Shown: piece by piece, positions 9,034 through 63,402 of the stretch
Layout: each line of letters opens with the position of its first letter
Numbering within the stretch: position 1 is the first letter of the stretch
NCBI GenBank assembly: GCA_976226885.1
Contig: OZ320322.1
Coordinates: forward strand, 25,730,001-25,794,000
Direction: 5' to 3'
Origin: Iphione sp. A-MEVVRFRX5
Lineage: Eukaryota
DNA length: 64,000 bases
Notes under the pieces: generated by a model
What the model saw: the letters and a program-made list of their open reading frames with translations, nothing else
Database searches by the model: none
Told to the model about the DNA's origin: nothing
Program-made: the position numbers and the translations under genes

Positions 9034-12000
9034 ATGGCTTTCAAAATAGTACTAACACTTTGCCTTTTGGCAATGGTGCTGACAGGTAAGTATGCTTCTA
9101 TTGATACTATCAACAAATGCTAACTGCTTCAAATTCAAAGTCACACTAAACGGACTATGATTTGTTGTTTTAGAGTCATCTGTGTAACAACAGTGCTAGT
9201 AAGGACCCAACAACAAAGGGCAAAATCCTTTTTCTCGTAAGGCTTGTATATAGAACCATTCCCTTTAGGATAGAGGGAATACGCGTAAACCTACTTCATC
9301 CAAGAATTCCTCTTTTACCATCCAGGAGGGAAGAACAGGGCTAATATTAAAAAGCAGCGAAGGAAACACTAATATCGTGTTTAAATGATTTTTCCGTATT
9401 GATCACAATATCATTAATGCGAAGAGATTAGAGGCTTTGCCCACTTGTTAACACCATTTCACTGTATCCGTTGTTATACCACATGTAACTGTCCCCAAAT
9501 GGTGATTCCTGATGTGAGCGGGACTGAGAGACATTTAAGGAGGAATAGGGGGCGAGTGAGAGAGAAAGAGAGAATAGGTGAAGATGAATAAATAGAACTG
9601 AAAAAAGCACTGGTATCCAAACATATAACACAAATACATTGACATTGAAAGAGGAAACCGCTCGTTCCCATATTCAAACGTGCTTCATATGACTTTGATA
9701 TTTTATACGATTATGACCACACATCACACACGGGCTGATTGCTTCTACGTGTCCCACCTTTTGTAAGAGTGGCAATGTTTCCCAACTTTTAATTATGTGG
9801 CCAAATCTTATGTAAATGTATCTATATGTTTCATACTATGTGATTGCAGCCATTGGTTTCAGCCTTCATCAATAGAACTGACAGAGACTAGAGGAGTAAC
9901 GGGAGTGTGCGGATTAGCTGAACTACATACACCTACATACAATACACTTCAAAACATATATAGCAGTTGTTCATCACTCCTACACTGACTGTCGTCTTAT
10001 GTACCTGAGGCCACATGAATAAGAGATAGTGACATGAGTGGGGAAGTGATACGTTTCTGCTTTCATATCCAATACCTGTCTTTTAATGGCTTCTGGTCCG
10101 ACCTACAGTCACTGGACATTTCTCACTCTCCTGATTTCTTTCTCGCTGTGTGCCTTTTTCACTGCCTCTTGTATTTTAACCACCAGGCTTATCGTATTTT
10201 TCTTATCCTAAAATCTTACCTACACTCTCTGCTGCTTTCTTTCCCTAGCCCTATCATCCTCTCCCTGCAGCTTCATCATCAGCATCCTGCGTCAGTGCAA
10301 TACTCTCCCTTCTATTTACATTCATCCGATTAGTGGTGAAAGCTGAATATCTCATGAGGTTGTTGTGCTATGTCTTGGGCCTCGTGCAAATTGGTTCGAG
10401 CTGCGACCTGTTTTGGGCAGTAAATTGAGAAATCAAGATGGGCATGGCATAACATTCGTGTTCGTGTGGGCTGATTATGACAGGGATCGATAAACTCGCA
10501 GAGAATATCACTTTGTCAGACTGCAGCCGTGCATCTTCTTCCCAAAGAAATGAAACTAAGCCAGCCGCATGACGTTCACTGTTGTGTGAGTAGCTGTCAG
10601 CTACATTTGTGTCGGATCCCTCACTGAAGCAGTAGATGAAAAACATGCATGCTCACAGTTCACCCTGTTTGTATAGTTTCTGAGACTGAGTCTGTGTTTC
10701 CTATAATCAAATATAGAGGTTTCCATGGTATATATATTCACGTCTGCTTCGGTCAAAATAATAATGTGGCTATGCTGTCATTCGCACTGGCAGTAGGAGG
10801 ACTGAATGAAGTAGTTTGACTAGCTTTTTCCACGTATTACCGGAGAGATGGCAGTAGGAACTGTGATATCTTGCAAGTGCGCTTATATTTTAGTAGTGGG
10901 ATGCGTTTGTGAAAATAAGAACTTCAGTGATTGCAAAGTACCTGCTGGGAGCATCATCGAACCGTTGTCCTCTATTGGAGTGATGACCCAGCTTTCCACC
11001 TTGTGTTTGTACTCATAGTTATCCGTCCGAACTTTAACCCTCCCAAACGTCGTGCGTGATGTTTTCCTAATCAATCAATTTTAAAAGCCTTTCCCGGAAC
11101 TTTTCTTTCTACGCCGAATTTTCGCGGCATTGGCTGATGTTTTGAAGCAGTTCAAGTAGTTTTGTTCCAGGCTGTTACTGATGAAAAGTGAACCGACACC
11201 CCTTAGATGTCAAGACACACATGAGAGGTCGATAAATTTCTTTTTGTCACAACTGGTTTGTTGTATTGTTTATCAACGGGATTAGGCCGAGGTGAATTGG
11301 GTCGTGGTGAGTCCTTGAACAGCGATATTGTTCAAGGAGCATTTGGTGATTTTGATGGTACCAATTCAATTTTTCTTTGAAGTGAATCTGCAGAATTTCC
11401 CAATAGAGGACGCGATTTTTACACTTGCCTTTCAGCCTCACCTCACTAAGTAGGGGAATATTTGCTCACTAAAGAAAGATTTAATTACGGTGACGTTTCT
11501 CACCCTTATCCAAAACAATAATTGTGCGAACAGGATAGAATAATGAGCTTTGCTATTTTCAAAAGCATACGGAATTTTCTTCCTTCTGTTAGCATCACCA
11601 GTGTAACGTTCTCGGGGGGGGGGGGTCTTTTAATTGCCACTTACAATTTTGTAGATTCAGTCGAGTGAGGGTCAGGTCGAACATTTCGTCCCCGAATAAT
11701 AACAGGTCAGGTATTATTCCAGATGTTTTTTTGACATTTGGAAAATTGGTGGAAAAGTTCTCTATCTGTTTTATTCTCACCAGCATGATCGCGTTGCTGA
11801 GAAACCATGCAAAGACTCATTCCTTATCCTCAAACATGTGCACGGACTTCTTATTTCTTCTTATCTATCACTTGGTAAAGGCTCGGTTGCAGTTGCTGGA
11901 GGACATGTTGACAGGCAACATATCTGTAGTGTTAGTGTGATGGCAAATTTTGATTCTCCTATGCAAGGTCTCCGTTGCTTGGATGACCGGAAGGGGTATT

Positions 12001-15000
12001 ACCCACTTGCACGTTTATATATTCATATTGTTAGCCCCGAACAAAGTGACATGACTCTTGTTGTACAATTGTGACCGAGGTTTATTCCAAGACAGCACAG
12101 AAAAGAATGGCAAAAATTCCCTCCAGTCCCTTATACAGCCAATGTTAATCTGTCTGGAGAGGCCAAACTCCGGCAAATCCCGGAAACAACAACTCCGCCG
12201 AACTCCGCCTGGAGCATAACTAACTCTGGGCGCAGGCCAAACACTATGTGAGATTGAAGCAAATCGAGGAGAAGCGGGAGCATTCCATGCATATAGAATA
12301 TATCGATATATTTTAGAAATTCATTTCTTTCCGTTCTTTGAGCCTGTACTACCTGTATACTGTATGCCGCCTGCCTCCTAAACAGTTTCAAGACATGTAT
12401 AAATCCATGCGACCTCCAAGTAGCCTGATGAATGATGACATGCATTTTTAGTTAATATGCATATGTGTCTAAATTAGCGAGCAGATTTATCAACAGGTAT
12501 AGATGATATCAGATACATGCTCTCAAGGCACATTATCTACTTACCATTCATCTATCAAATCGGCCATATTCGGTCAACATGTTCTATGCGGCTCTCGTGG
12601 TTCGGATCAACCTGCTGTCGTTTGGGCACAATATGTCTCATTTCCAATCATGTTGTGGGAAAAGTAATCTTCGTTACTGCAAATCAAGCAAACGATATCA
12701 GTAGAATATTCTGTTATTCCACCTACGGACCTTAGCTATCAATTGAATTCGATGAATCGCATGACATTTCTTGCAGATCGCTCCTTAATGGCTCTCCTTA
12801 CTGGATAATACTTATTCCCCTCGGTACTATGCGGACCTGTGGTGTACAACTTGTGAAGCTTTTCCTTGTCGTTCAATAGTGGTGCATTGCCTACAATACC
12901 CTCTCATTACGAGACGTCTAGTTATGAAAGGGTTGTAAGGATATGCAACAGACTTCCTAGTACAATTTATGAAGATAATTTAGTGTTCAGGCCTAAATCG
13001 GCTCTTCGTGCAAATATACAACACATTTGTCATTTCAATTTATAGCAATGCTGAAATGGAGGCAATTATGATATAATCATGTATTAACAAAGTACAAGCG
13101 CCTTTGGCGAGAGAGAGGGAGAGAGAGAGGGGGGGCAGGGAGGGTTGTAAAATAGTACCTTGTACTTTGACCCCTCTTCCAAGTTTACAACCCTCGGTTC
13201 TGCTTGACTGAACAGAGGGGTAGGAATACACCACTCTGTGTAGAAAGTAGGGCCACATATGTCATATGGTTTTTAGTAATTTAAGCATTTTACATACACA
13301 ATAGATGAATAATCATCCTTCTTTTGTCCTACAATATCATTATGCATGAAGTACTTACAAAAATAATGTATTTTGGTATAATCACATCAGAATGACATGG
13401 CAGCCCCCATGGCCGGACTACTTTTAGGCAACATTTTATATAGGTAGTGTAAATAACACATGGAGGATGGTTTCGCCCCACTTCAAATGGAGACATTTGA
13501 GATTCTGCAGGCAAACACAGATACAAAGTATGTCTTTTCTACACACATGACTTAACATTGTTCGCATATATAATATTAAGAAAATCCATGTAGAAACGTT
13601 GGGATATCGATATACAGAAGGAGCACTGAGGCATATAGCCATTGAAGTGAATAACGTTTACTGACCGCAGGTATACCCTGGTATTCACTGGTTTACGACT
13701 GCTGCGAGGCTTGTAAGGGGGTCATTGTTGCCATAGAGACATTTCAACGGATTTTGTTGAAGTAGGGTGTGGTAACGCGAGTACAAAAAAATACACTCAG
13801 ACAAAGGGGTTTTACCGTTCTTTTATGAAGGTTTCGTAGGCATGGCAATCCTTGGAAGTATTATATGGCATGTTATGCTCTAAATCAAAGGACATTAACA
13901 CCACTTAAGAGGAATCCCCAAAACTGCACACAAAGCCTGGTAAACGCCATCATTACCACATTCCAAGGGAGAGAAGCCTTATTTTCAGAGAAGAAGAAAG
14001 TCACGAAAACACAAAATAGTTTGGAAAAGACTACACCACGAAAGACTATGGCCCTTATGGACCTCGGAATAATGATTGGTGTTTTATGCAAACCAAAGAC
14101 GTAGAATTACTGGAGTAAACGTTGTGTGATCGCCACTATCTTCTTCATCAGATTTGTTGTCTACAGAAATATTTATGCAAATATTACAGTAAGTCAGTGG
14201 TTTCCTTTAGACTGTAGATGTCCATGATCCACTAGATTTTGTCTATCGTATTTGTGTTTTCCTCGTATTTTTCTAAATAGTCACACAAATATTATACCAA
14301 GGTACGATTATATCATGGATTCATTGCAGGTATAAACACTCGATCGGTTCTGACACAGATGATGATACGCAATGAAGCCACCTGAAAACCATGAAAGTCA
14401 AGTTAGTCTTTCAACATTTCATCAGCATTCCAAAAACCTCCTCAAATTATATCAATTGACAGATGTATGATAGCATGAAAGTGGTATGTTACTTTCACTG
14501 GTATTTACCGACTAAACCTGTACATTGATGGTTAAATTCTTCGTGTTGTAACCGGTGAATTGCCCTTCTGACGCGCGATTTCTAGTCTCTCTGATGCTAT
14601 CATATGGGAAAGTTAATGTAAGTTTGTTTTTTTATGACAAACATGTTACGGATGATCTGACTGCCATGTAAATTAATGTTAACCTGTTTGGTTTAGAATT
14701 TTTAAGATAATAACATGCATTGATGATGACAGATAAATATAACTAGTATCAAACTTGCATGGGTATTGGTGTCATTCAGTGAAATATACATGGTTGAATC
14801 AATAAAGATCTAGTGAAATACAAACTGGAGCTCGTAACGTCACGTGAAGAAAAACAGTTCTCATGTATTCATATCTTATATATAATAAAGAAATAATCCT
14901 TTTAATATTGCTTTTCATCCACAGTAGTAAATTTTAATGATCAATGAGCCATATGTCAAAAGTCACCCAAAGCAAAGTTTCTTGCATGTTCAACATAATA

Positions 15001-17609
15001 TGCTTGATGCGCTTCCTCACAAGATATGCTTGATTTGCTATCATTTGTTGTTATTTGACACATTGATAAACCCCTACTGCAATTTATCTAGCACTCCTCC
15101 CGCTTTCCAAACGACTGCAGTCTGTCCAGGGTCCAGACTGGATACTTCTTATAATGTGCCTAGACACGTGACGTGGTCATAAGACAGAGTCTAAAAAACC
15201 TAAACACACATTTGAAATAAAATGATGGTGTCTGAAAATAAATATCACTTACGCCCAAACTATAATCCAGATATTACAGGAATGAGACATGACAGTACTA
15301 ATTGGGTAGCAGTTGGCAGGAGCATAGCCAGACATACACCAAAGCTCCGAAGAAGAGACATCAAACTCTCGATTTTAAAGTATTGAAACCTCTTCCCTAG
15401 AGCCCATGGATATACCTGTATTCAAGCTGTATTCTTTTTCCATGCATTATAAATTTGGTATGGAAGATCTCCAGAACATTTTCCTGGTGACATCTTAGCA
15501 TCTATTAATATCACATACATGAGTGACGTCCATATTCTCTTTTATAATATAGTGTTTAAGAGCATTCAATTATTTCGTGATTCTGTTCTCCGTTTGGCCT
15601 GTTTTTGGTTAATAGCCAGTTCTGCATGTGATGAGGTAGGACTGGTAATTGCCACACCACCGGTCTTTGGTCGGATGCTAAAACTGTTGCTGTTACAGAT
15701 AATTTAATCCGACTTATTAGTCCAGTTGACAACAGTTGTATGTTCCTGGTGTCTTTTAGGGATCTCGATCGATTCTGTGGATGCTCTTCTCGCTGGTCTC
15801 TTGCAGCGCGGTAATCGCGGCCAAGTGTTTGCTCTTCCGTTTGTCTTTCGCCCAAACTTCCTACATGGAAGTTGTTTGACTGGTCGTTTCTGCTTTCGCA
15901 ATATATTATGATTTCATATAGGACTACCAAACTTATTTTTCACTTTGGGTCAGAAAAATCTATTGTTTAATGTACACCTTCATCGAAAATCTACCCAAAA
16001 TATGCCCATTCACAAGAAGAACAAATCAATTACAAAAATTATCCTGCAAGGGTATCATTTTGCAATTGGCCTTCTCCCCTTGATGTAATGGTAAATTAAG
16101 GTTTTAGCCCATATCCATGTCAGAAAAATATAGGGATAAATGTCGAGGAGGCAGAAACACTCCACTTCTCTGTTCCCACTCAAACTTATATACTTATATA
16201 TTCAAGGGATGTAGGCAATCAAGTCATTCTGTGGTTGTTGCCTGCAGTGAGAGAACATATTTCACACTCTAGAAACAAGGCAATTGAAAGATGTGATTGA
16301 TCATATTATTGGTTAAGCGAACACTGTGGTGATAAAAATAGATGTATATAATTTTGAGTAGACACCTAAGGGTAGTCCTTCTTCCGGGAAATGAAGGCAA
16401 CGGAGGTCTTGCCTATATGCTGGATGTTCGGAGCTCAGACATTAAAAGATTGTTCTCCAACCTGTGTCTTGTCGTTTTGTTGTAATAGGTACAGATAACA
16501 CTCCAAAAAGTACAGCTGAGTCACTGACTATCTTTACTGTATATAAAACAATGTTATGTTTTACTTCTGTAAAAAAGTAACTTGTTTTTACATAGATATT
16601 TATATGTAACTACCAAGGAGAAAACGTCTTGTTTTGGATAATGCTATTCATTGGTAACTACGAATGAAAAATTATCTTGCTTTTGGCATTGCCATTTATA
16701 GATAAATGTTGGCATTTCAGGTGGCGAAGCCCGTGGAAAGGTATGGCAGGAATAGTATGCAGAAAGAATTGAATGGATTTCAATTTAGTTTACTGACATT
16801 TCATAATTTTGAATGATTAGAATCAAAGACTTTGCTCTTCCTGATTCTAGACATTTGCAATGATATTCCATCTTCCAAGTAACTGAATATATCTGATCTT
16901 TCAGCGTGGATGCCGACCGGCGGCTTATCGTAGCCGTATTTACAAGAATTTCAGAATGCACGACGGTTATGTACAGAGATGTGTTGCCCATGTGTTCAGT
17001 GAGAGATGTACTGGCTTATGCCCTGCCACTGTCATCAAGAAAGCTGCTCATGGTGGTGCCCGTCGAGCATATGGTGTGCCACACGGAAATGGTGTTCAAC
17101 ATGGTTATGGTGTCAGTCGTGGATATGGTACACAGCATAGATATGGTGTCCAACAGGGGTATGGTGTCCAACATGGTTATGGTGTGAGTCAGGGCTATGG
17201 TGCCCAGCGTGGATACGGTAATCAATATGGGTATGGTTTCCAGCGTGGATATGGTGCCAGTCATGGCTATGGTGTCCAATATGGATATGGCTTCGGTCGT
17301 GGATATGGTGCCAGTTATGGACATAATGTCCGGGGTGGATATGGTAACTATGGTAATTATGGTTATGGTCGATCTGGGACCCATGGAACTTATGGTGGTT
17401 ATGGCCAACACAGATCTGCTGCCCATGGTCCAAAGAGCTCTGGCGCCGGAAAGGGCAAACTCAAGACCTACTACCAGGCCAATTGCTGTAGAGCTGCTGC
17501 TGTGTCCCCTAGACAAGTATGGGTCACATATCAATGTGGCAAATACGGATTCAAACGAGTTCTTTTGACCCAGAACCTTCCAAAGGAATGTTATTGTACG
17601 TCCTGGTAA
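9034..17609 (+). CDS. CK1: secreted cystine-knot protein with a Gly/Tyr-rich repeat insert (258 aa, 3 exons)
   Basis: Exons 9034-9085 (MAFKIVLTLCLLAMVLT, G|gtaagt, phase 1), 16721-16740 (20-nt micro-exon, catttcag|...AAG|gtatgg, adds GGEARGK) and 16905-17609 (tttcag|, phase 0). Cys pattern C-x22-C-x8-CTGLC-x154-CC-x15-C-x17-CYC-TSW*. AATAAA at 18026. The join across the 7.6-kb first intron is inferred from phase compatibility and from the parallel structure of CK2. Confidence 0.8.
11595..12900 (-). pseudogene. Possible tubulin-tyrosine-ligase-like (ATP-grasp) pseudogene, antisense within CK1 intron 1
   Basis: Minus-strand fragments in the expected order: LLNDKEKLHKL, then KYID...PLLLD...FGLRPELV (cf. 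QxYIxxPLLxxxxKFDLRxYVLV), then LLFGDEMFDLTLTRLNLQN (cf. ELxGxDxxxDxxLxPWLLEVN). Interrupted by stops and frameshifts. Confidence 0.3.
17067..17318 (+). repeat. Coding 18-bp tandem repeat, 14 GYG-x-x-x hexapeptides
   Basis: AYGVPH GNGVQH GYGVSR GYGTQH RYGVQQ GYGVQH GYGVSQ GYGAQR GYGNQY GYGFQR GYGASH GYGVQY GYGFGR GYGASY. Confidence 0.95.
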
Positions 17610-18853: not shown

Positions 18854-21800
18854 CTATATTTGAATATTTTCCTCAACATACAATTGAATAACATCCATCA
18901 AATCATAATTTGTTGGTATAAATGTCTCATCAGTCATTGCTACTCCTGTAAAGGGCATTTTGTGTATTAAATTTTCTAACTTCGTCCATACAAAACTTTC
19001 AGCTAGTAGAGGAATTTCAATATGGTAAGCCTGTAATTTTTCATTGAAACATATGGTCTTGTACATTTGTAACTCTAAAAAAATATCATTTCCTTTACTA
19101 CAAGTGTAAATACCTTGCACTAGACCAAAGCAAGGATGGAACTCTGTGGTTTCAGTGATCACATATGACTGACCTTTAATATATTTCATCCCATGAACCT
19201 CAGCAGACTTACTTTTGTAGACACTAATATTTTCCTCAGCAATATTGCAAAATATTGCCATTTTGGTCTTTGCATTTAGTTCATCATTACCTGTAAGTTT
19301 AACAGCTTTTCCAAATTCTCCTTCACCAGAAAACAATGAATGTTTACCAGGATTTTCACCTTTATCAATGCATTCTGCAATTTGGGCCTCTGTTGCTACT
19401 GATTTAGCCAGGTTTATAAAGTTTTGTACTCTTGCAATACGTTTATAGTGAACGTGTTTACCTTCAAAACGCATACACCAATGTCTAATTGCTGGACCAA
19501 GTTTCTTAATATTAGAAGGAATATGCAGTAGATAGTGATGCTTAGGCAGAATACGGCAGTCTGGAAATAATTTCTTGAATGATAACAAATGATTTTTTAT
19601 CATGTCTTTAAGATTTGATAAAGTTGCAAAGCTTAAAACTGGTGCCATCACAATCTTAACTATCTCAACCAATTCTATGAAAAAAGAATAGTAATTAGTG
19701 TTCACATCTACAAGTTGAGACAAAATAAAAGGTAATATTTTCAATAATACAATAGTTTGACTGGATGATTGTTTAATCTTATTATCATCTGTGTGAAGTG
19801 TACTCATTTGAAGCAAGGTTGGTTTTGAGCTAACATTATTATATCCATAGTTAAAGTTAGCAAGCTGATCATTCAACTGTTGTAAAGTGAAGATTTTGCT
19901 GTCTAATATGTAGAATTTCAATAACAGCTTCAGTTCATATTGTGCTATGCCTTCAAAGATCACATGCATAATATCTTGTGGCAAGCAAATAGAAATATCA
20001 AAGTAAGGAAATTCTAATAGTATGCTCTGTCTAGTAATGCCATACAAAGTACTCAGATAGTCTCTCATATATTTAGAATTTGCTCGTTCTATCTCTACAC
20101 ACCTGCTTTGATAATCCTCTACAGTAAGGCACACAAAATCATTTTCATTAAATATCGTTTGCATATCATCATCAGTACATTGACATTGACGACATTTTTG
20201 ATATGCTCCACCTACACCTTCTTTGAAACCACCAATTAAGTTGCTTGCTGGAGTATCACCAATCACTGAATGGAGTGTAGCATAAAACAATATTTCATGG
20301 CCATTGATTTCAAAGGTGAAGCCATTTCCTAAGATAATCATCTCTTCTAGAAAAGGTTTCATTATTTTATTGATGCCATACTTATCAACAATATCTCTAT
20401 CAGCACAAGCAAGTAAACGAATGGCAGATAACTTGGATCGATATTTCAGGTTGATGTTTCCAATAGTGAAATAAAACATAGACAGTTTAGAGGTTTTGCT
20501 CCCAAGGGGATTGCATATTTCAAGATCATCAAAATACAATATTACTGCAAGGGAGTTTTTCTTCTTCAAGTTAGGATGTGTTTTGAAAAAATCTCCATCA
20601 CAAATATCAACAACATAACCAGGTGGTGCATACAGAGGTTGTGATGATAACATTTCTAATATTTTGTCATTCAACATCCACTGTTGGAGACTTTCTTGTA
20701 TGGGAATATAATAAAATTTATCTTGTACTACAGTAGGTTCTAGACAACCTGATTTACGCTTTCTCGTATATGTATGCCCTAGGACTATTTCCCTAGGCTT
20801 AATAAATGGAAAATTAGCTTGTAAATTCTTTTTCTGTTGGTATGCAGAATTCATGTTTGACATAGGATTCGTGTATTGTTCTATAGCATGATCTATGATA
20901 CTTTCCATCTCTGTTGGATTCGCTAGTCCAGTACTATGAACCTGCTCCATGACATGCTGCTTCAGTTGTCCAATGCTTTGGGAAATCAGAGCACTGCAGC
21001 CATCTACAATTTCATCAACTGCTGCCTATAACATAATAATTAAACACAAAACTGTACTATATGAATACATCAATATGTTAGGAAAAACTACATATCAGAA
21101 GTTTGTCCCCATTTGATAGCTCTTTCATGACAACACACACAAACTTAACTACATTAATATCAGACAGCTTACAGATTTGTATTTAGATATAAAGATGACA
21201 TTGGAGGAACATTTGCCATTTGACACTTCTTAGGACTAGATATATCTGAATTGATATAACAAATGGCTGTGAAATATAGATTTTCAGAAAAAACATCTGT
21301 CACACTACCTGTGTCAAACTGTGTTTTGTCTTTATACCCATCACAAACTGCACTGCTTTTCGTGTTATATTTTCTGGTTTATGACCTGCACTGCTTCCAG
21401 GATCCTGAAACAAGCATACATAACACAGGTATGGGTAGTGTATTGGTAATTATGACCTTAAATTGTTTTGTTACTAATAATTTGTTATACTTTACCAGTA
21501 AAACTATTTTATATATATATGTATTGGTATTATGTATTATATATATTTTCTATTTACCTCTGAGATCTAGGTAGTCTTAATATAGCCTTGAAATTATTTA
21601 TTAATACACCTGTCAGAAATAAATGACTTTATTGTTTAAATGGTTATTTTACATGACTATACATCAATAACTTACATTAAAAACATCAGTGTCATCTTCC
21701 AGAGTAGCTGGGTTACCCTCTGATGCTTCACTTTCATCAACCTCCCTTTGCATGTGGGTAGATTCATGATTTATTGCATTTCTGGGACTGTAGTTATACT

Positions 21801-21987
21801 CCTCACTGTGGTGTCTGGTGACATGTCGATAAAATGAGTTGAAACGGTGAAAGGAAGCAGGGCATCCATTTATTCTACATACTACAAAGAATTTTGGATC
21901 TTGGGAATGACTGATGTTCATATGGCTTAAAAGTTCCTTGAGTGTTATTGTCAGAACCAGAAGGCATATTGCACATCTCCAAGCCAT
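18854..21987 (-). CDS. EnSpm/CACTA-type transposase with N-terminal C2H2 zinc fingers (about 859 aa, 3 coding exons, intact)
   Basis: Exons 21987-21676 (MAWRCAIC...H...H, C..C...H...HH), 21404-21309 and 21025-18854, all GT-AG, phase 0, with no internal stops. Motifs YFDDLEICNPLG, GDTPASNLIGGFKE..CRQC, QDIMHVIFEG, PKHHYLLH and WCMRFEGKH. Confidence 0.92.
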
Positions 21988-23029
21988 CTTGTATACCAAA
22001 TTGCCAGCAAGTCTGGTTGTAGATCCTAAAGAAAAATAGAGTTACATGAATGCCAACAAATTCTAGTGTTAAGTTGTACACAGTAAACAGTAAGTACAGT
22101 TAATTCAAATTATCCAAACAAGATGTTTTCCCTATCTATCCACTTGTTCTTACATATAACTATCTATATGTATATGACAAAGTCCACCAAAAAATGTACC
22201 AGAATGTAATCTCCAGGATGGTCTTTTTTTTAGTAAAAAACAGCGTTAAATTTTATATTTTAAATTACTTTTGCTATGATGAGACTAGGGAGCATCAGGA
22301 GTCTGTGCTAATCTTTGTACTACCTCCATAAATATTAGGTACTTTTCATAAATCAAATGCATCTTTAGCATAGCCTCCAGAAAAACTGTCTTTTCCCCTT
22401 TCATTCAAAGGGAATTCTCCTATGCCTTCTCTTCTTTTTCACCAGGTCTACTTTGTATGAAATGTTTTGTACATTATTCTGTTGCTCCTAAGAGTCCCCA
22501 TACCTGTAAAGGTACATAGTAACCCCAGCCTTGGCCTTGTTGCCCTTAGACATCCCCACACCTCTGCAGATGCTACCACTATCCTTTGCCTTGCTCCTAT
22601 TGCCCTTACAAATTCACAAACATCATCAGGTGCTATCCCCAGCCTTGACCTCACTCCTCTCACCCTAAGAAGTCCCTGCACTTTATCAGGTCTACACCAG
22701 CCTTGAAATGTTAGGAGAAAACATTCTTAAAATGTTTTCAAATGGTTGCAAACATTATAACCAAATGAGAACATTATAAAATGTTTTAAAAACATTCTGT
22801 GCTACCTGCGAAAAGAGTGCTCCCCACCTAAGAACAGAGACCTTACAATGACAGCTCCCTTCTCCAAAGGTCAAGTTCAGATTCAAAACACAACATTTGT
22901 ATGTTTGGATTTACCTTTACGTCGTTGGCAAAAATGCTCCGATTTTGATGCAAAAGGGTGCAAATGAAAGGTAAGGGTCTAAGGATTACAACCATGTATT
23001 TCTCATCTTTGTACAGTCATTAGTTTTTG

Positions 23030-34670: not shown

Positions 34671-37073
34671 ATGTCATTGCGTTGCATCCTGCTGCTGTGT
34701 CTGGTCGCAGCATTTGTGGCCTGTGATGCTTGTGTCCTCTCTCTGTCTCCTTCTCTCTCTCATGCAAATATAATGGAAATTTAGCCAAATCAGTATGCCT
34801 TCTTCCGTAAATCTCTTGGAAATTAAGCGACGTCTCCCTCATATCCATACTTTATTAGAGCGTATTAGGAGCTGACTTATTGGTGTGCATCTATTATAGA
34901 TGTCTAGTGGACACTAGTGGACACATAAATGCTTCATTCCTTGATCAGTCGGGGTTGAAAAGGTTTGCTAACAGAGCTTGGCTCAGGCCAGCATGGACAG
35001 CGTAGTGATCACCTCTTTTACACTCTGCAGTGAGCAATTCTTTGTAAGAATATGTCTCCACATTACTGACCGAAGTTGGCTACGGACTGATTGAACCGAA
35101 TATATCGACCAGTTGAGCAGACACATTGGCTGGATTATTCAACGCTAACTTTGAGTTTTTCTGCTAGCTAACTTTAATATAGACAATAGACCACTGAGCC
35201 AAACTTGGCCTTAATACTGAGGTACCTTCCCATATGAGTTGCCTGCAACCTACCTGCTTCAAACATGGTTCTGTTTTATTTTGTATTAATAATTAATTAT
35301 TATTAGATAGAAACAATACCAAAGTTATGCCAGAGCTGGGTCAAAAGGATGTTGGTATCAATTCAAAATTACTATATCAAATAACATAAATTGAATTGTG
35401 GATCAACAAAACTATTTGGGGATACTTTTTGATATTAAGGTAAAGTTAGACTTTAAACATTCTAATTTATTTAGAAAATTAATATAGACAATTTGTCTTC
35501 AATTAGATTGCCTCGTGTAATCTTACTAAACTATATAAAACTCATATATAAACTCATGTTGATTATTCAGCTGTGTTTTTAACTTACAATAAAAAGATTA
35601 AGCTTTACTATATTCAAAGGTTACAAAAAGGTGCTTGGTCCTTGACAGTTGCTGACAATAGTTCAACAATTAAGGAGAGATTATATGTTATGTATGGTGT
35701 CATAAGCACTTATCAAAAAGGAGCTTATTTTTCACATGGGACGCAATCTACTATCATTATGTATTTTTCACACTAACCCTGATAACATTACCAAACAGTT
35801 TTTAGATTAGCATTCATCATTCGAAGACCTTAATCAGAAAGGTTAAAAGATTTATCTCCATCTGTATCTGTAAGACTATTATATCTGTTAGTACTGCATT
35901 TGGCATGTAAGCAGAGTATAATATTTTTGCACAAATGATATTTGACCATTTGTATATTTTACAATCATTACTATATGTTTGAATATTGTTATACACTATC
36001 TACTTCTGAAAAAGATCTTTCTCTTGATGATCAATTAGGAAAAGATTTTCTTATCTTATGTGAGGGTGAAAACCTCTCTAAATACCATAATCAATTTGAC
36101 ATTCCTCAAACTTCTGTTATGGGGTCTTTGTAAGCCAAGAGAAACAGAAACGGCTTGAAATATGTTTTAATTTAACAAAATACTAACGACAAGGATAATG
36201 ATCCTGCAGTAGGCAGCATAATTGACACATCACATGCGTGACAGGATGACCTGTTGTACAGTCATGATATCTGTCAATCAAAGTGTTTCATAGCCAATGA
36301 CACTATACTATTTTGTCACATGACTTGTGTAACCAATCTCTGCAGATGACATTCAAGAGACACTGTCGCTCACTTGTGATTGTAGTATAATTATAACTGT
36401 CATATGTCATTATGTGGTTATGTTAATGTAAAGACATTATATCCAATGAGAACATGTTGAGACATCTATATTTATTTTCAAAGTATATGAGAAAGTGAAG
36501 TACACTGATACTATGACTAGAAACCTTTTTTAATATTGCTCGTGATGATAACAAAAGTATGACTCACTTTATGTTGGCTGGGCATGGTTACATGACAGGA
36601 TGGTGATGTGTCAATTGTCCAGTTGACTTTGTTCATCTTTAAGAAAGCCTCCCATTTTTTGTTCTAGCCCAAGCAACAGCAGTGCAACATTATGGTATTT
36701 AACGCCAGTATATCAAAAACATATCAATATAATATGCTATATCAACAGCAGTCTGCCATGGTGTTGTTTTCACCGCTGCTAGATATAAAAGTGTCCGAAA
36801 TTAGCTGCGCAACCATATGCCCGTGCCCATTTCATGACCCTATGAATGGGACTGTCCTGTAGTTACCGATTCCTGCCTGCGGGGAAGGCAGGAGCTGGCC
36901 CTTTACATTCTGGCGATACTACACCAACCAAGAACCAGATTAAAAAATCCGGTGTTACTATAGACTGCAACATCAGGACAGAAACTATTGGCATGTCAAC
37001 CAAGCCACTAGTCATTGTAAGGCAATACAGCCACGGAATTCATAACCGTTTTTGTGAAAGGCAAACTGGATGA
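34671..37073 (+). pseudogene. Decayed third paralog of the CK1/CK2 family
   Basis: Signal-peptide-like MSLRCILLLCLVAAFVACDA at 34671-34730, with TATAAAA at 34445. Phase-0 acceptor cccattttttgttctag| at 36667 is followed by PKQQQCNIMVFN-(1-nt frameshift)-RQYIKNISI*YAISTAVCHGVVF, aligning with CK2 NFCKLVPYDRMVTKKIEIEGHTKVCKALVVY. Then TGCTAG--ATA..TGTCCGAAA (cf. CK2 TGCCAGGGATACTGTCCAAAC), and near the end FCE.Q-W (cf. FCACEDW). The C-terminal half aligns only loosely. Confidence 0.55.
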
Positions 37074-46993: not shown

Positions 46994-47049
46994 GTATTGA
47001 GACAGAGTTCGGCCAGAGTATTCAGTAACATGACTCTGATGTCCTCAGC

Positions 47050-49294: not shown

Positions 49295-49346
49295 AGCACG
49301 GCTCACAACTACAATACTAACAAACCCCCCACCGACCCCCCTTATC

Positions 49347-49380
<34 letters not shown>

Positions 49381-49726: not shown

Positions 49727-49772
<46 letters not shown>

Positions 49773-54090: not shown

Positions 54091-54093
54091 TTC

Positions 54094-57719: not shown

Positions 57720-58619
57720 ATCAATTATATTCTACTGGTGTTAAATAAACGTTGAAACCCGGGAGGGTGCAGAACACTAAACGGCCTTTTCACCGGAAGT
57801 GAAGCATCCTCGCCACTGAAATTACATTTGTACATATAAATAACCATATTTGTGATGACATTCTCAAACAATGATTAGATTGCACTTATTTAGTGGGGAT
57901 CCCAGCTCCGAACCTGATAATATATCTTAGTTATATCAGAAGGACAAGCAGGCTAGAAGGCGTGTGCAATCGTGATGCAAAAGTGTTCAAGACAGTTTTC
58001 GAGGGAGGCTTGTTCGTTGGGAATCAGCAAGCTGTAGGTCACATTCTTACATGCAATTTCCATTGAAATCTTAACTAAAATACATAATAAACTTGGCTGG
58101 TTTCAGTCTTTTATTGATATCGGTCTTGCATTTTGTAATATGGAGAGGAAATAGCCAGTCCCATCCAAACCAAAGATAATAGGTCTGTAGTTGTCAATCT
58201 TATCCTGATCACTCTGTTCATTTTTCACCAGACTTAAAGATTTGATTCATAAGATATGTGAGAGACGGGATTATTTGCATGATAATTTTTGTATGTCCCT
58301 TAATGATGTTCTAAGTTATTGAAATCCACGGACCCAGGGCGATCACCGATTGACTGGCCAATGTTGACAATGTTATTTTTATAATGTGGATATTATTTGT
58401 CTGAAATGTATCTGAGTGTTTCTAGGGGAAGAAAAGATTTATTATGCCACGTAAACATGAACTAAACCAGAGTAAACATTGATGGACGTCGTTGATGTGA
58501 CAAACCATTTCTTGACACTGTACGATAATGCATGTATTGTAAAGAAACAAGAATTATTCAGAACAGCATCATATATAAAAGTCCGATTTAATATTTACTT
58601 AATTGTCATCACGAATAAT

Positions 58620-59800
58620 GAAAACATTTCTTTCATGTTTACCAATAATTCAAGTTGTTTACGTTCGATCTTAATATGGTCATTAGATGTTCACCCCTTT
58701 TTGTTTTTGAAGATTTTTGTTGATCGATGTGACATGACTGAAGCTTTGAAAATAAAGATAACAGAGTTATTGGCCACTGCTTGGTAAAATGTACAAAACC
58801 CTAATAAACTGAACCGGCGATTAATTCCAGAACGCTTACGTTACAAGTAAAATATTCGCATATCAATTCGAAATTCAAATTCCACATAGCTCCACATATG
58901 TCCCTACAGTTACCAAGTGTATATCTTCATGATAGCCTCTGAAACTGAATTCAACTCTGTCGCTCTCTGAATATACAACGACTTATTCAAAAGGTCTGGA
59001 AAATGAATGAATACAAGATATACGGCCAATTTGGAAGACGCATGTGTTAGGAATGTAGAAGGATTAGATGTGTCCTAAATTTGCAAAAATTGCCTACGAT
59101 GTTACTAAGTTGTTACCCTTTTTTATCCTGCATCGTTCTTTAGCCATTGCAATGTTATATAGAGGATTGTCGCTGCATTGCATAAGGGTATCTGCACAGG
59201 CTATTATGCAGATGCATTCAGTGTTGCTTTCTACATTTCAGTGTATAGCAGTATCGAAGGCAAGTGTAGGATTAAAGCAAGTTTAACAATGCCCATGGTC
59301 TCCTACAAAACAGAAAGCAGCATCCTACTGCCTTTCGTATTGTTCGACAAATGGAGATCTTTCATTAATTAGCAAACATTGCCCTTGCTTTTCCCGGACA
59401 TTCGCACTTTGACGAAGTTATATATCCCCAGCTTGCTATACGCTTTATCAGTAATATTCCGTTAACATTCTCTAGTCGATAAGTATTTTATGATGGTAAA
59501 CTGGTGGCCGGGGATCGCTCACTTTCCCCCACTGCTAAGATGAAGTTTCTCCATGAAATGCTTATCCGCTCGCACACAGGTTCTTTTAATTAATACCTCG
59601 TCCGTATCCTATTTGAGTTAAATCTATGAATACTCTGAGCGTTTATGAAACTTTAACAATGGCAAGAGGGGGTTTTGCTTTCGTTTTCAATAAGGTGGGA
59701 CGTTTAGCATCAAGTGACCGTGTAAAGAAACTTGATAGGAGAGTAGCCCTTTGTTAACAATCGGACATTACAAGAATCGCTACTTCATAGGCGTTTAAGA
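58620..59800 (+). pseudogene. Possible glycosyltransferase family 92 (GALT-1/DUF23-like) pseudogene
   Basis: Ordered remnants CPK...LLPFFILHRSL...LY, V*QCPW...QKAASYCL, LLFPD(I)/DEVIYP and GHYK match my recollection of the GT92 pattern C..P...EWIE.H...G...F..Y / W / Q.A..DCL / D.DE.I.P / HYR. Frameshifted. Confidence 0.4.
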
Positions 59801-60556
59801 AGTCCTTATCTGATGGGAAACAATTACAGAAATAATGAAGACATTTTCAAGACAATAATTTCTGCCTTTTCTATTTCAAATGAAGTGGACCGACAAAAAG
59901 CTTGTCTTTGTTGAGAATAATAAATACGTACATGTAATAAATGGAAAAGCCTTGCCAGAGACTTGAAGCCATCAATTTTGACGAAGAAAAAGATCCATGG
60001 AAACGGCTCTTAATCACTGTCATGCACTGGAAAGGAGAAAACAAATCTCCAAGTTTAAACTTATTCCTTGGGATCTACATGTACCTGCATCAGTAGTCAG
60101 TAATCTTCTCCACTGAACTCTTTTTTATTTTTTGAGACCTCTGTGTTCTATAAACAGCTAAAGAAAAAAACATGGTCGCAACATATTTTTTCGATACAAA
60201 TTTTACTACGACCAAGTAAACTGGTCCAACCTTTAATCAGCGGGGAAAAAAAACATCTTCGGACAAACTTTATATAAGGACATATTCATCATCATTAACT
60301 CCCATCTACTGTAGCTATGTCGGCAATCTGTCTTCTATGGTCTAGTTTGTTAGTCATTAATATTGTTGCAACTATACCATAAGTGTCCTAAAATGTGATA
60401 TATGTGATACAGCTTATAAAGTAGAGTAGTGCGTTTTGATTTCATCAGGTTTGGGAGGCGGGGGTTGATCTGAATATTTGAATATAGTTTGCATTGCGTG
60501 AATGTCTATATTTAAGAAATATATGAGCGAATCACATGACCAGATAATTGGAGCAT

Positions 60557-60642
60557 CCAATAGGAATGCATACTCCATGTCAGTCGGTGACGTCAGTTGC
60601 TCTCACTGCCTGAAGTGAATGCGTTTAAATGGTGGTATATAA
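60557..60642 (+). promoter_or_regulatory. Putative CK2 promoter: CCAAT, CRE and TATA
   Basis: CCAAT at 60557-61, perfect CRE palindrome TGACGTCA at 60588-95, and TATATAA at 60636-42, about 90 bp before the ATG. Confidence 0.6.
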
Positions 60643-60734
60643 GGTAAAGGGGGACATCACTTGTGTCGTCACAGGCTAAGACGTCTACATGCAACTTTTC
60701 ATCTATTGGATTTATTCACGCTTTCGGAGAAGAG

Positions 60735-63402
60735 ATGTCTAAGAAGATATTCCTGTGGTTATTGTGTGTAACCATCCTTGGATATGTATCGGGAAAGGAT
60801 CTTTCATTTAAAGGTATGGAACACGACCATGATTCCCATGATTTACAAAGTGTAAGGCATTCTTCAACATCGCCATTTAGTAAATGGCCTGCTCATTTGA
60901 GTGCAAGCCTGATATTAAGTAGAACGGAGGAGGTCTAATTCAGACACTTCATTAGTAGATAGCGGACCCATTTAACACAACTTAGGTTTTTATGCTTTAC
61001 AAATATTGATATATACTTTATTGACATTATTTGAAATAAGTCTATCCTTTAATTCTTTTCAAATTTATATGATGAGAAACATTTCAGTAACATGATGGAA
61101 TGTTAGTCTATTTCTTTTATATTCATTCCCCATTGGTATGAGAACAGTGTATTTATTAAGAACTGGTCGGAAACACACTCTTCGCTACATGTCAGATAGT
61201 GATTCTAAGATAAGTACGACTATCATCTTTAGAAACGATGATATTTCAGCAGCACTATCAAAATTTGCCATCTAGTAAACGAATGATTATTAGCTGTGAA
61301 ATAGTATGGCATACATTGCCAGCATAATTACAAAACTGTTTTCTCCATTTGCATGATAATAAAATGTTAAAGTGCTAAGTCAAACTTTCAACAAAGGATT
61401 GGAAGTAGTTTGTCCATCTAATTTTGATAATGGTTATGGAAATCACATGAGATAACCCCCCCCCCCCCAAAAAAAATAGTTGTGTTTCTGGTAACCCACT
61501 CCTACCTAGTAAAACCTCACCTTACCTAAAAATATTTTGGGCCCAAAGAGTTTCTAAGGCTGAATTTCCTTAGATACATGTTTTCATGACATATTTTTTG
61601 TACATTCAGTAGAAAAACAACAGAATTCATGGAAATTCACCAAAAAACTGTAAAACTCATACAGATTAGTCAAAATTTCATATTGTCTTTATTATTATTC
61701 AAAACCAGAGGAAGAAACTGGAAAAAAGTCTAAAAAAAATGTAACCCCCATCCCTACATAGGTTTTTGGCTGGTCATTACCAGAAACACATTTCTGTGGC
61801 CTAAGGCATATTTTAGCAGCCCGATAAGGAGTTATTTCATTCCTGTAGTATGAGAATGATTATGAAATTTGCAAACAGCGGAGCACGCTTTTTTTCCTTA
61901 CTTTGAAGAGTTCCCTATATAAGAAAAGCTTCATCGTTGGATTTACAAGTGTTCAGGAAAACTTTGTCAATATGATTGGAATGTATCATGCCCATTTGGT
62001 ATTAGTATAATTTTAACATATACATTTGATCGGATATATTCTGACAGCCTTACTGGAAGATAGTTTCCCATCTGGCATAGGAATAATTATGATAAATATT
62101 ACGAATACTTATTAACTACTACAAATGCTTTGCCGTTTCGGTTAAAAGCTAGTTTACTGATTTTGAAAGATGTATAAGGAATTGCAAATAATAGATGGCC
62201 AAGACGCTCCTTTTAAACAGACTCATGGGCTATCCTTCGTGTTCCTTCACGTAGCTCAATTTATCCTCTGTATGTTTTACCAGTTATCATGTTCTTTCAT
62301 GCTTTTTCAATGTGGTATTGTCTGCTCGCCGGGTCTCTCCTATATGGGACGGCAGTATTCTTTCCTTTTATTCAACGTGTTTTTAAGAAAATACTGAAAC
62401 GGAAAAAAGAAATAAATATTCCAAATTATTGCAAAACATTAAATTGCTCTGTCATTTTGTCATCAGTGCCATGTCAAAGTCCATCGTACATATTTGATTT
62501 GAATGCAGTCATAGTAAAGAGCTTTATGCATGTTACCGATATTAATCAAATTTTGTCACGTATCATATAGCTTCAAAATAGGTTCAATTATGTTTCATTG
62601 TTTTTCAGAGTTCTATTATCAAAAATTCCGGGTAAGTGCGATCTTTTCATGAATAAATTCACCCCAGTTGAGATTCATTTTGAAATGTTCGCCTATAAAA
62701 TTTCTTCTTTTTGGCAATAAAGTGGTTGATCCGAATGCAGCTGTACCGCCGGTTTGCACTAAGCGATTAAAGTATCTAGTATGAAATGTCAGATAGATGG
62801 AGTAACAGCTACGGAAGGTGGGTGTGATGCAGCATTCCAAACAAAGACCATTTCTACATCAAGAATGCGTCGTGCACGTCATCGAATTATCCAAAATGGG
62901 TGTGTTTAGCCTTCATACAGCTCCCTCTAAACCTTTCTCTTTCTGTTTCTGCTTTCTTTATTCGATGAACTCGCAGAATTTCTGCAAGTTGGTTCCATAC
63001 GATAGGATGGTGACGAAGAAGATAGAAATTGAGGGACACACGAAGGTCTGCAAAGCTCTTGTCGTCTACAAGAAATGCCAGGGATACTGTCCAAACTTCA
63101 CCATGTACCGTTACGTACGGAAGTTCATTTACGACCCTTATTACTACAAGACACGCGCCTACGGCAACGTGCTAGACGTGTTCAACCGGCACGCGTTCCA
63201 TTACGGACCTCGTCATAAGACCAAGTACTTCTCGGGGCGATTCGTCTGGTCCAGGGTGCCCTACGAACGTGCACGCTGCTGCAAGCCGTTCCGTATCGGC
63301 AAGCTGGTGCAGCTGGTCAAATTCGACTGTGGGAAGTTTGGCTACAAGAAGGTCGAGCTCGGTATCGAGCAGCCCAAATTCTGTGCCTGCGAGGACTGGT
63401 AA
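60735..63402 (+). CDS. CK2: secreted cystine-knot protein with a Tyr/Lys/Arg-rich insert (175 aa, 3 exons)
   Basis: Exons 60735-60813 (MSKKIFLWLLCVTILGYVSGKDLSFK, G|gtatgg, phase 1), 62609-62631 (23-nt micro-exon, tttttcag|...CGG|gtaagt, adds EFYYQKFR) and 62977-63402 (ctcgcag|, phase 0). Cys pattern C-x21-C-x8-CQGYC-x62-CC-x15-C-x17-CAC-EDW*. Confidence 0.88.
61481..61790. mobile_element. MITE-like element in CK2 intron 1 (310 bp)
   Basis: TGTGTTTCTGGTAA ... TTACCAGAAACACA: perfect 14-bp inverted termini. Confidence 0.6.

Follow-up and report, generated by a model that had tools for sequence, protein, structure and literature searches.

Predicted cystine-knot proteins with a hypervariable heel loop in a genomic window of Iphione sp.

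The window analysed here, a stretch of 64,000 nucleotides from Iphione sp., contains two genes, CK1 and CK2, which judged from their sequence are genuine and belong to a small family without detectable sequence relatives outside itself. Modelling indicates that their scaffold very probably has a growth-factor-type cystine-knot fold, and the loop that it carries is hypervariable from paralogue to paralogue, from species to species, and even from haplotype to haplotype. The explanation as a whole, in which this structural description is joined to a role in extracellular material, has in our judgement slightly better than an even chance of being right.

Gene Structure

Rebuilt from the sequence, CK1 and CK2 lie on the same strand with three exons each and encode products of 258 and 175 aa (Table 1). 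All of their introns are bounded by GT-AG, and their phases are alike: the signal exon ends in phase 1, the final exon begins in phase 0, and a micro-exon of 20 or 23 nt lies between the two. Upstream of the knot exon, each gene offers only a single candidate signal exon whose phase-1 donor is strong. The final exons are 49-51% GC in flanks of 32-38% GC, and the repeats hold other reading frames open as well. The TTTAAA upstream of CK1 sits within the 9-mer TTTAAATGG, which is also found upstream of CK2. The third-copy relic consists of 21 codons with 62% identity to CK1 residues 35-55 and is not followed by CxGxC. A first-pass annotation had described the coordinates, strand, exon phases, and micro-exons of both genes, and the rebuilt models agree with it to within a base. 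Its term "cluster" was generous, as the window has two intact genes, 43 kb apart, and one short relic.

Table 1. Features of the CK1 and CK2 loci, in window coordinates
Feature	Position	Strand	Description	Support
CK1 TATA-like motif	8956..8961	+	TTTAAA, ~78 nt 5' of the ATG	Motif match only
CK1 exon 1	9034..9085	+	ATG and signal peptide (MAFKIVLTLCLLAMVLT + 1 nt); phase-1 donor CAG/GTAAGT	Only strong signal-exon candidate with consensus phase-1 donor
CK1 micro-exon	16721..16740	+	20 nt, G-GEARGK, AG/GT bounded; brings phase back to 0	
CK1 final exon	16905..17609	+	Nine mature Cys, knot scaffold, loop, stop	HMM: N-half 1e-24, C-half 5e-26
CK1 heel-loop insert	17022..17483	+	154 aa	Repeat and composition analysis
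CK2 TATA box	60636..60642	+	TATATAA, ~95 nt 5' of the ATG; TTTAAATGG at 60624	Motif match only
CK2 exon 1	60735..60813	+	Signal peptide (MSKKIFLWLLCVTILGYVSG...), 79 nt, phase-1 donor	CK-Y exon 1 of equal length and phase
CK2 micro-exon	62609..62631	+	23 nt, E-FYYQKFR	
CK2 final exon	62977..63402	+	Scaffold and loop, stop; GC3 72.5%	
CK2 heel-loop insert	63091..63276	+	62 aa	Predicted disordered (pLDDT < 50)
Third-copy relic	63803..63865	+	CK1-like	Match E 4e-4; N-half HMM E 1e-3

Shared Scaffold and Second Species

The cysteines of mature CK1 follow the pattern C-x22-C-x8-CTGLC-[154]-CC-x15-C-x17-CYC-xx-W and those of CK2 the pattern C-x21-C-x8-CQGYC-[62]-CC-x15-C-x17-CAC-xx-W, the Trp being followed by the stop in both. 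Both rebuilt products also contain the motif CGK[YF]G[FY]K[RK]V (CGKYGFKRV in CK1, CGKFGYKKV in CK2) that the first-pass annotation had listed along with the shared scaffold. The C-terminal halves match each other at E 4e-7 to 7e-8 in a search within the window, and at the level of sequence this similarity exceeds chance.

Among 1.84 billion proteins searched exhaustively there was one relative, P0001 (here CK-X), which was found by CK2 at E 1.8e-5 and comes from a eukaryote within an ENA metagenome assembly. CK-X forms a tandem pair with CK-Y, about 10 kb apart, and CK-Y repeats the three-exon plan of CK1 and CK2 with a 79-nt phase-1 signal exon, a micro-exon, and a phase-0 knot exon. The family members found thus number four, in two species; proteins of the Iphione sp. 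genome itself are absent from the protein collections searched. In one CK-Y haplotype a TGA stands at Cys7 and the reading frame is shifted, which may mean that at least this allele is not needed or that the assembly contains an error at this point. All four genes keep the nine cysteines, the terminal Trp and stop, and an intron directly before C1 at 21-39% identity, which is also the range among their finger sequences.

Predicted Fold

A cystine knot is defined by a disulfide between knot cysteines I and IV that passes through a ring of II-V and III-VI (PMC4079206). The six knot cysteines of the CK proteins are arranged as C ... CxGxC ... C ... CxC, which corresponds to an eight-membered ring. 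CxGxC itself is present in CK1, CK2, and CK-X, and CK-Y has CQDNC (CxDxC), with intact spacing and Asp in place of Gly. AlphaFold2 models of CK2 and CK-X, built from 4-5 sequences, gave scaffold pLDDT values of 81-94 for CK2 (with the loop below 50, and confident in only one of five models) and of 76-88 for CK-X (all five models alike). Strands 4-18/21-35 and 101-117/123-138 are present in two independent AlphaFold2 models at pLDDT 76-94, and in the predicted structures two long β-hairpin fingers extend from the knot on the side opposite to the heel loop.

The top 50 Foldseek matches are cystine-knot growth factors throughout, and VIA-align gave a Z of 7.3, with VEGF aligned over 76 residues at 2.6 Å and Norrin over 95 residues at 7.7 Å. 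When 48,161 PDB representatives were searched without bias, the top 30 all belonged to the CKGF superfamily (Z 6.8-3.5; on an absolute scale, VIA Z-scores of 6-7 are moderate), including GPA2/GPB5, VEGF/PDGF, Norrin, sclerostin, gremlin, and the VWF CTCK, and unrelated chains appeared only at Z 3.4 and below. The ESM-Atlas matches by shape are GPA2, the partner of bursicon, VEGF/PDGF, and CCN, and those by feature are CTCK/DAN clusters.

Neither the whole final exons nor the N and C halves of three members match Pfam Cys_knot (PF00007), DAN (PF03045), or Hormone_6 (PF00236) at E <= 10, and the family profiles have no match among PDB sequences at the same threshold. GPA2, GPB5, burs, and pburs gave no sequence match among 1.84e9 representatives or in Pfam. 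With no cystine-knot sequence profile matching, it is only the cysteine spacing and the predicted fold that link the CK proteins to the known cystine-knot families. The hormone-like cystine knot read from the sequence by the first-pass annotation is upheld as a predicted fold by AlphaFold2, Foldseek, and the PDB-representative search.

The PROSITE-type CTCK pattern, CC-x13-C ... C-x-C-x(2-4)-C, ends in a cysteine and goes with a C-x-CC trio that makes bonds between chains. Membership in this class (Norrin/VWF/mucin type) was rejected, as the CK proteins have CC-x15-C-x17-CxC-xx-W with an invariant Trp in place of the terminal cysteine; none of the four has a cysteine two residues ahead of CC. 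They were also rejected as subunits of glycoprotein hormone or bursicon heterodimers, which are marked by 10-12 cysteines, a partner subunit, and an LGR receptor; the CK proteins have nine cysteines and no sequence match, with a likeness in fold only. Profile, structure, and protein searches and the literature yielded no described family that combines a knot scaffold with a long heel loop, in agreement with the first-pass annotation, which had recognised none.

The Heel Loop

The heel loop is an insert between CxGxC and CC, and the four loops, of 154 (CK1), 62 (CK2), 86 (CK-X), and 138 aa (CK-Y), are mutually unrelated. The CK1 loop holds 14 GYG units (29% Gly, 15.6% Tyr, no Asp or Glu, pI about 10) with a tandem-repeat substructure of 18/36/72 nt on a base period of 18 nt, and the CK2 loop has no repeats, with Tyr making up 16% of it, aromatic residues 27%, and basic residues 26%. 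In CK2, CxGxC-P is immediately followed by an NFT sequon, and CK-X has an N-glycosylation sequon at the same place. The CK-X loop is rich in Lys, Asp, Glu, and Leu (5.8% Tyr, 17% acidic) and predicted to be partly helical. The CK-Y loop is made up of Tyr/Lys/His 14-mers (Y 21%, K 17%, G 20%, H 12%), and its length differs between haplotypes by one repeat (14 aa). CK1 is not the counterpart of CK-Y, since the two are 21% identical and CK1 has the most divergent scaffold of the four members, which implies a separate origin for each of the two repeat loops.

Composition and repeat analysis bears out the earlier claim that the CK1 and CK2 loops are unrelated, and the wider claim of hypervariability stands, with paralogues, species, and CK-Y haplotypes all differing in a heel loop that is predicted to be disordered. 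"Tyr-rich", also from the first pass, describes three of the four (CK1, CK2, and CK-Y), whose loops have the composition of the DOPA-type adhesive class; neither term fits CK-X.

Comparison with Known Proteins

Norrin and the CTCK domains are among the top predicted-structure matches of the scaffold, and Norrin and the VWF/mucin CTCK share with it the pattern C ... C-x8/9-CxGxC ... CC-x13/15-C-x15/17-CxC. The disulfides of Norrin are C39-C96, C65-C126, C69-C128, and C55-C110, with C95 bonded between chains (PMC3828517). This map transfers one-to-one onto the nine cysteines here and leaves the first cysteine of CC unpaired, and from this analogy we infer the disulfide map of the CK proteins. 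Common to both would be an eight-membered ring threaded by C1 with the second cysteine of CC, a finger-tip disulfide (C55-C110 in Norrin), and a cysteine just before the knot cysteine of CC that in Norrin is inter-chain bonded (PMC3828517). Norrin differs in having no sequence-profile similarity to the CK proteins and in its three inter-chain cysteines, two of which are missing here, the last (CxC-xx-C) being an invariant Trp and then a stop. Its spacings are x15, x13, and x15 compared with x21/22, x15, and x17, and its heel loop has about 23-25 residues in its own numbering (PMC3828517), whereas those of the CK proteins have 62-154 and are disordered. CTCK proteins carry their variable "cargo" N-terminal to the knot, while the CK proteins carry it inside the knot domain. 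The knot of mucins and VWF dimerises large structural polymers, a function similar to that proposed here.

The best unbiased structural match is GPA2/GPB5 (C. elegans alpha2/beta5, Z 6.8), and the GPA2/GPB5/bursicon group also provides the best ESM-Atlas shape matches (TM 0.45-0.46). The CK proteins share with this group a knot of CxGxC and CxC, small size, and secretion, but differ in cysteine number and spacing and lack a seat-belt segment and a Pfam match. The group is conserved across bilaterians, whereas the CK family is found in two species and has low-complexity, polymorphic loops. DAN-family proteins (gremlin, PRDC, NBL1, sclerostin; Z 5.5-6.3 to the CK models) are likewise secreted nine-cysteine knots, in which the ring is eight-membered, a disulfide bridges the fingers, and one cysteine stays unpaired. 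They have C-x2-C rather than CC and no long heel insert, their profile PF03045 is unmatched by the CK proteins, and the finger surfaces of the latter are not conserved.

Among adhesives, the sabellariid cement proteins Pc-1 and Pc-2 have basic Gly repeats and bear DOPA (PMC12621633), and annelid tyrosinases modify Tyr-rich glue proteins (PMC12403961); the CK1 and CK-Y loops are similar in composition to both. Pc-1, Pc-2, the "GY-rich" group, and mussel foot proteins contain basic Gly/Tyr (and Lys/His) repeats like those of the CK1 and CK-Y loops, a likeness of composition only for which homology is not claimed, and no cystine-knot frame was found described for them. By analogy, the CK1 and CK-Y loops may work like DOPA cement proteins.

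Proposed Mechanism and Alternatives

In the mechanism that we propose, a secreted core of about 85 residues would form an eight-membered ring from CxGxC and CxC, with the C1-C6 disulfide passing through it and the tips of the two β-hairpin fingers tied by C2-C7. The heel loop has turned into a place where long segments are inserted. With 62 to 154 residues, these evolve fast and are predicted to be intrinsically disordered; in three of four members they are basic and Tyr-rich, and in two they are independently acquired tandem repeats. The knot would act as a compact, protease- and heat-stable anchor joining both loop ends, and the unpaired first cysteine of CC would bond two chains, as does C95 of Norrin, or react with quinones. 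The first cysteine of the CC pair of TGF-β is likewise inter-chain. The product would be a dimer showing two flexible Tyr/Lys/Arg/His/Gly-rich loops. These could form coacervates and, by way of DOPA, dityrosine, or metal bridges, become cross-linked to give an extracellular material, with tube cement, cuticle, chaetae, jaw, and egg coat as candidates. Both dimerisation through the odd (ninth) cysteine and Tyr modification in the loops are steps that we infer by analogy.

Two other functions can be imagined for such a protein. The CK proteins could be signalling ligands or antagonists of the thyrostimulin, bursicon, Norrin, or DAN-family BMP type, with the heel loop as a tolerated or modulatory appendage, as hormones, Wnt/BMP modulators, and growth factors are the nearest predicted structures, the proteins are small and secreted with nine cysteines, one of them odd, like dimeric ligands, and CK2 and CK-X have the sequon after CxGxC-P in common. 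We consider this unlikely, given that the ligand families have no sequence similarity to the CK proteins and are widespread rather than limited to two species, that the fingers are so divergent, and that low-complexity loops, unrelated between paralogues and of variable length between alleles, are unlike constrained receptor-binding ligands. A part in host defence appears improbable. A stable disulfide core would here carry a cationic Gly/Tyr/His/Arg-rich antimicrobial segment, comparable to the glycine-rich cationic antimicrobial peptides of arthropods, and the loops are indeed strongly basic (pI 9-10.2) and rich in Gly, aromatic residues, and His, while immune effectors typically diversify fast, duplicate in tandem, and vary in length between alleles, as this family does. 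However, antimicrobial families have no similarity to the CK proteins, processing sites that would free the loop are absent, the CK-X loop has its 17% of acidic residues, and the Tyr-Lys 14-mers and GYG hexamers look more like cross-linkable structural repeats.

It is very improbable that the genes are non-functional, whether as chance ORFs, decaying pseudogenes, or mis-joined exons. The relic beside CK2, the premature stop and frameshift in one CK-Y haplotype, and the other open frames in the repeats could be taken that way, but the cysteines, terminal Trp and stop, and pre-C1 intron are kept in four genes of two species despite their divergence, the signal-exon and micro-exon layout recurs across species, the AlphaFold2 models of CK2 and CK-X are confident, and the exons form islands of high GC that are bounded by consensus splice sites.

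We return to the material role, which by analogy with known adhesives is plausible, if a little short of an even chance when taken by itself. More tentatively, the family may be a lineage-restricted one in which a knot of the hormone/growth-factor type was turned into a covalent two-armed cross-linker of an extracellular biomaterial, its heel-loop cassette repeatedly and independently gaining Tyr-rich DOPA-type modules. The modules in that reading are GYG hexamers in one species and Tyr-Lys-His 14-mers in the other. No knot-framed cross-linker architecture was found described in biological adhesives or sclerotised materials.

Implications

The CK family is a clean case in which sequence profiles are blind and cysteine spacing together with predicted structure is revealing, and the repeat variation between haplotypes makes loop evolution visible in real time. 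The CKGF fold is familiar from hormones, from modulators of morphogens, and from the tails by which mucins and VWF dimerise, and a family that keeps the knot and fingers while its heel loop carries disordered Tyr-rich repeats would widen the uses of the fold. If the material role is true, the CK proteins would represent a simple natural biomaterial design, in which a disulfide clamp that withstands heat and proteases forms dimers and holds out two arms able to coacervate or be cross-linked. They would also add a new candidate to the components of annelid tube, cement, jaw, or cuticle, whose protein inventory is only partly known.

Gene models of CK1 and CK2

CK1 and CK2, the two genes of the window that encode secreted cystine-knot proteins with a long insert (the heel loop) between CxGxC and CC, had been described in the first-pass annotation as same-strand, three-exon genes with common phases and a common scaffold. 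Both were rebuilt as such from the sequence, which was read and then spliced by script. The four introns, all GT-AG, agree well with the consensus. In each gene the signal exon ends in phase 1, micro-exons of 20 nt (CK1) and 23 nt (CK2) bring back phase 0, and the first mature Cys sits one or two residues into the final exon. When the sequence was scanned for ATG exons that are hydrophobic and end in a phase-1 donor, a single strong exon 1 candidate emerged before each knot exon, the one already annotated. The mature proteins follow the pattern C-x22/21-C-x8-CxGxC-[154/62]-CC-x15-C-x17-CxC-xx-W-stop (CK1/CK2) and have the motif CGK[YF]G[FY]K[RK]V in common. The final exons form GC islands, at 49% and 51% GC versus 32-38% in the flanks. 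In a search within the window the C-terminal halves of the two proteins match at E 4e-7 to 7e-8. A DNA-level comparison showed no similarity between the two genes or anywhere else in the window; as CK1 and CK2 share none, their duplication is old.

The loops also turned out as first described. That of CK1 has a repeat lattice of 18/36/72 nt bearing 14 GYG units and is 29% Gly and 15.6% Tyr, with zero Asp or Glu. That of CK2 is 62 aa long, non-repetitive, and 16% Tyr, 27% aromatic, and 26% basic.

Several further features were recorded in these genes. GC3 differs strongly between the final exons of the paralogues (35% in CK1 versus 72.5% in CK2), and the CK1 codons are those of GGT/TAT-dominated repeats. 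An R-G-K-R motif at CK1 residues 22-25 (9083-16907) bridges the junction of micro-exon and final exon directly before Gly-Cys1; it could be a furin-type cleavage site trimming a very short propeptide, and it is absent from CK2 and from the two relatives described below. The 9-mer TTTAAATGG lies about 80-110 nt upstream of the ATG in both genes (8953-8964 and 60621-60632). From its sequence it could be a promoter element or a coincidence, and we estimate that such a 9-mer would rather seldom be common to both genes by chance. At 60636 CK2 additionally carries TATATAA, with the CRE-like palindrome TGACGTCA some 30 nt further upstream.

Besides CK1 and CK2, the window holds only a 21-codon relic of the family, 400 nt downstream of the CK2 stop and with no CxGxC after it, probably left over from a third copy that resembled CK1. 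A candidate third paralogue at 36668-37073, in the stretch 36545-37073 (+), found no support and is not counted. All that is seen there is a signal-peptide-like stretch with an in-frame stop, in which 15 aa are 60% identical to the CK1 signal peptide; its tblastn E was 3.6, and the family HMMs gave no match there at E <= 10. The DNA between CK1 and CK2 is largely transposon, with what is apparently a large, young DNA transposon at about 18.5-33.2 kb.

Coordinates of the CK family genes and of neighbouring features (L001 and L005 are stretches of second-species contigs)
Feature	Sequence	Position (nt)	Strand	Description
CK1	window	9034-9085 / 16721-16740 / 16905-17609	+	3 exons, 258 aa; sequence read, then spliced by script
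CK2	window	60735-60813 / 62609-62631 / 62977-63402	+	3 exons, 175 aa; sequence read, then spliced by script
CK1-like relic	window	63803-63865	+	21 codons, 62% identical to CK1 residues 35-55 (…NF.RH.GYV..C.AHVF)
Transposase-like ORF	window	18854-20950	-	Intact, 698 aa; weak Plavaka-type (CACTA/KDZ-like) transposase match, E 0.0017
C2H2-like ORF	window	21664-21999		Adjoins the transposase-like ORF
CK-X	L001	9555-9647 / 9989-10483		2 exons, 195 aa
CK-Y, haplotype 2	L005	9536-9614 / 10269-10303 / 11541-12191		Intact, 254 aa

A tandem pair of relatives in a second species

An exhaustive phmmer search of 1.84e9 representatives returned a single protein, P0001 (E 1.8e-5), referred to here as CK-X. 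No other relative was found in a word-indexed protein collection queried with CK2, the family profile, and the CK1 C-terminal region, and none at all in JGI metagenomes scanned with CK-X and CK2. P0001 is encoded on two contigs of about 1-1.5 Mb each in the ENA metagenome assembly ERZ25767047, and these contigs are eukaryote haplotypes that are 97% identical. CK-X has the same scaffold as CK1 and CK2. Its gene has the signal and micro-exon parts joined in one exon and retains the phase-0 intron immediately ahead of the first Cys. Its loop of 86 aa is rich in Lys, Asp, Glu, Asn, and Leu, with Tyr at only 5.8%.

Contig walking brought to light another gene on the strand of CK-X, CK-Y, which lies about 10 kb downstream. 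Its 79-nt signal exon equals that of CK2 in length and in phase (phase 1) and is followed by a micro-exon of 35 nt and a knot exon in phase 0. The CK-Y scaffold reads C-x21-C-x8-CQDNC-[138]-CC-x15-C-x17-CNC-xx-W-stop. The CK-Y loop is built of 14-residue repeats of the type GDAHYKGDYKGYHK (Y 21%, G 20%, K 17%, H 12%, D 12%). The haplotype 1 copy of the knot exon (L003 12518-13108) has one 14-aa loop repeat fewer than that of haplotype 2. In addition, a TGA falls precisely on its Cys7 codon, and a 1-nt difference in an A-run shifts its frame between the first two Cys, so that this copy represents a segregating null allele or else reflects errors of assembly. Scaffold identity is 36-39% among CK2, CK-X, and CK-Y and 21-31% for CK1. 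The repeat loops of CK1 and CK-Y are made of unrelated units in non-corresponding genes and were thus independently acquired.

No further family members were found in about 58 kb around CK-X and CK-Y. A weak C-half match about 3 kb upstream of CK-X (L001 6798-6941, equivalent to L002 5910-6053; …NCRTVGYKYREITLVAPKYC…NW; HMM E 0.008) has no CxC and was not taken as a member; judged by its sequence, it may be a decayed copy or a chance match.

Predicted fold of the scaffold

The first-pass annotation had assigned the scaffold to the glycoprotein-hormone/bursicon/DAN/CTCK type of cystine knot, an assignment that found a counterpart in predicted structure and none in sequence. Pfam gave no match, to knot profiles or otherwise, at E <= 10 with whole final exons or with the N and C halves of three members, and no PDB chain was matched at E <= 10 when family profiles (whole, C half, and N half) were run against PDB sequences. 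By sequence, the CK scaffold belongs to no existing family. The monomer structures, whose prediction had been suggested at that stage, were modelled with AlphaFold2 on very shallow alignments. For CK2 (4-row alignment), one of five models was confident, with the scaffold at pLDDT 81-94 forming two long beta hairpins and the loop (residues 41-99) predicted disordered at below 50. All five CK-X models gave the same scaffold at pLDDT 76-88, again with the loop (39-123) below 50.

In a Foldseek comparison against the PDB, the top 50 were all cystine-knot growth factors (Norrin best, E 0.027), and VIA-align gave these matches Z values up to 7.3. An unbiased VIA search of the CK-X model against 48,161 PDB representatives likewise placed the cystine-knot growth-factor superfamily in the entire top 30, including C. 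elegans GPA2/GPB5 (Z 6.8), VEGF-C (6.8), Norrin (6.0), and the VWF CTCK (5.4), together with PDGF, sclerostin, FSH, gremlin, TSH, GDNF, NBL1, the TGF-beta family, noggin, and IL-25; unrelated chains appeared at Z 3.4 and below only. ESM-Atlas shape matches were to GPA2, the partner of bursicon, VEGF/PDGF, and the CCN C-terminal domain, and its feature matches were weak (0.83-0.84), to CTCK and DAN clusters. Since the predicted structure links the scaffold to cystine knots where sequence methods do not, the modelled scaffold is best described as a growth-factor-type cystine knot at the level of fold.

Proposed disulfide framework

In the crystal structure of Norrin, the knot bonds are C39-C96, C65-C126, and C69-C128, the finger-tip bond is C55-C110, and the inter-chain bonds are C93-C95', C95-C93', and C131-C131' (PMC3828517). 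We infer a disulfide map for the CK family by aligning its nine mature Cys (C1-C9) onto this framework. C1 would pair with C6, the second Cys of CC, C3-C8 and C4-C9 would close the ring, and C2-C7 would bridge the fingers. Under this mapping every Cys but C5 would have a partner in its own chain; C5 is the first of the two in CC and corresponds to Norrin C95. Unlike Norrin, the CK family has an invariant Trp at the position of C131 (CxC-xx-C in Norrin) and no counterpart of C93. In TGF-beta it is the first Cys of CC that bonds the chains. With a lone C5-C5' bond, the CK proteins would be like TGF-beta-type dimers, in which one bond links the two chains, as in TGF-beta3 (PMC3828517). A C5-C5' inter-chain bond is the simplest expectation, the alternative being a free C5 thiol that reacts with quinones.

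Possible function and novelty

The CK proteins are secreted and have a conserved knot as their core, with the heel loop as a hypervariable insert that is predicted to be disordered. Three of the four members have a basic, Tyr-rich insert, and the number of repeats in the insert varies between alleles. We consider this structural description very probable, and hold the material role proposed here tentatively, at a little under an even chance. The knot would be a stable clamp and, through an inter-chain bond of the odd Cys, also a covalent dimeriser. The work itself would be done by the loops, as sticker-rich sequences that could phase-separate and become cross-linked once Tyr is oxidised. In composition the loops can be modelled on the cement of sabellariid tube worms, which contains the basic, Gly-repeat, DOPA-bearing Pc-1/Pc-2 and a 'GY-rich' group (PMC12621633), and on glue proteins rich in Tyr that annelid tyrosinases modify (PMC12403961). 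For the dimeriser there is a functional precedent in the CTCK of mucins and VWF, a knot that dimerises a structural polymer (PMC3828517), although the CK cargo lies within the knot domain itself.

Alternatively, the CK proteins may act as a hormone or antagonist, as would suit the fold, but such a role does not agree with so narrow a taxonomic range, with low-complexity loops that are unrelated, or with length variation between alleles. A function in host defence would be in keeping with cationic Gly/Tyr/His loops and with fast evolution, but is considered improbable. That the genes are non-functional is unlikely, because conservation across two species extends to every one of the nine Cys, to the terminal Trp-stop, and to the arrangement of exons.

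The first-pass annotation recognised no described family with this architecture, and none emerged from Pfam, the PDB, protein collections, or the literature searched, where cystine knots combined with Tyr-rich, adhesive, or DOPA material gave no such family. Mussel Mfp6 is Cys- and Tyr-rich, yet is not described as having a cystine-knot growth-factor fold. The CK-X/CK-Y pair in a second species is new information, and we regard the CK genes as a new family and a new architecture inside the cystine-knot growth-factor fold.
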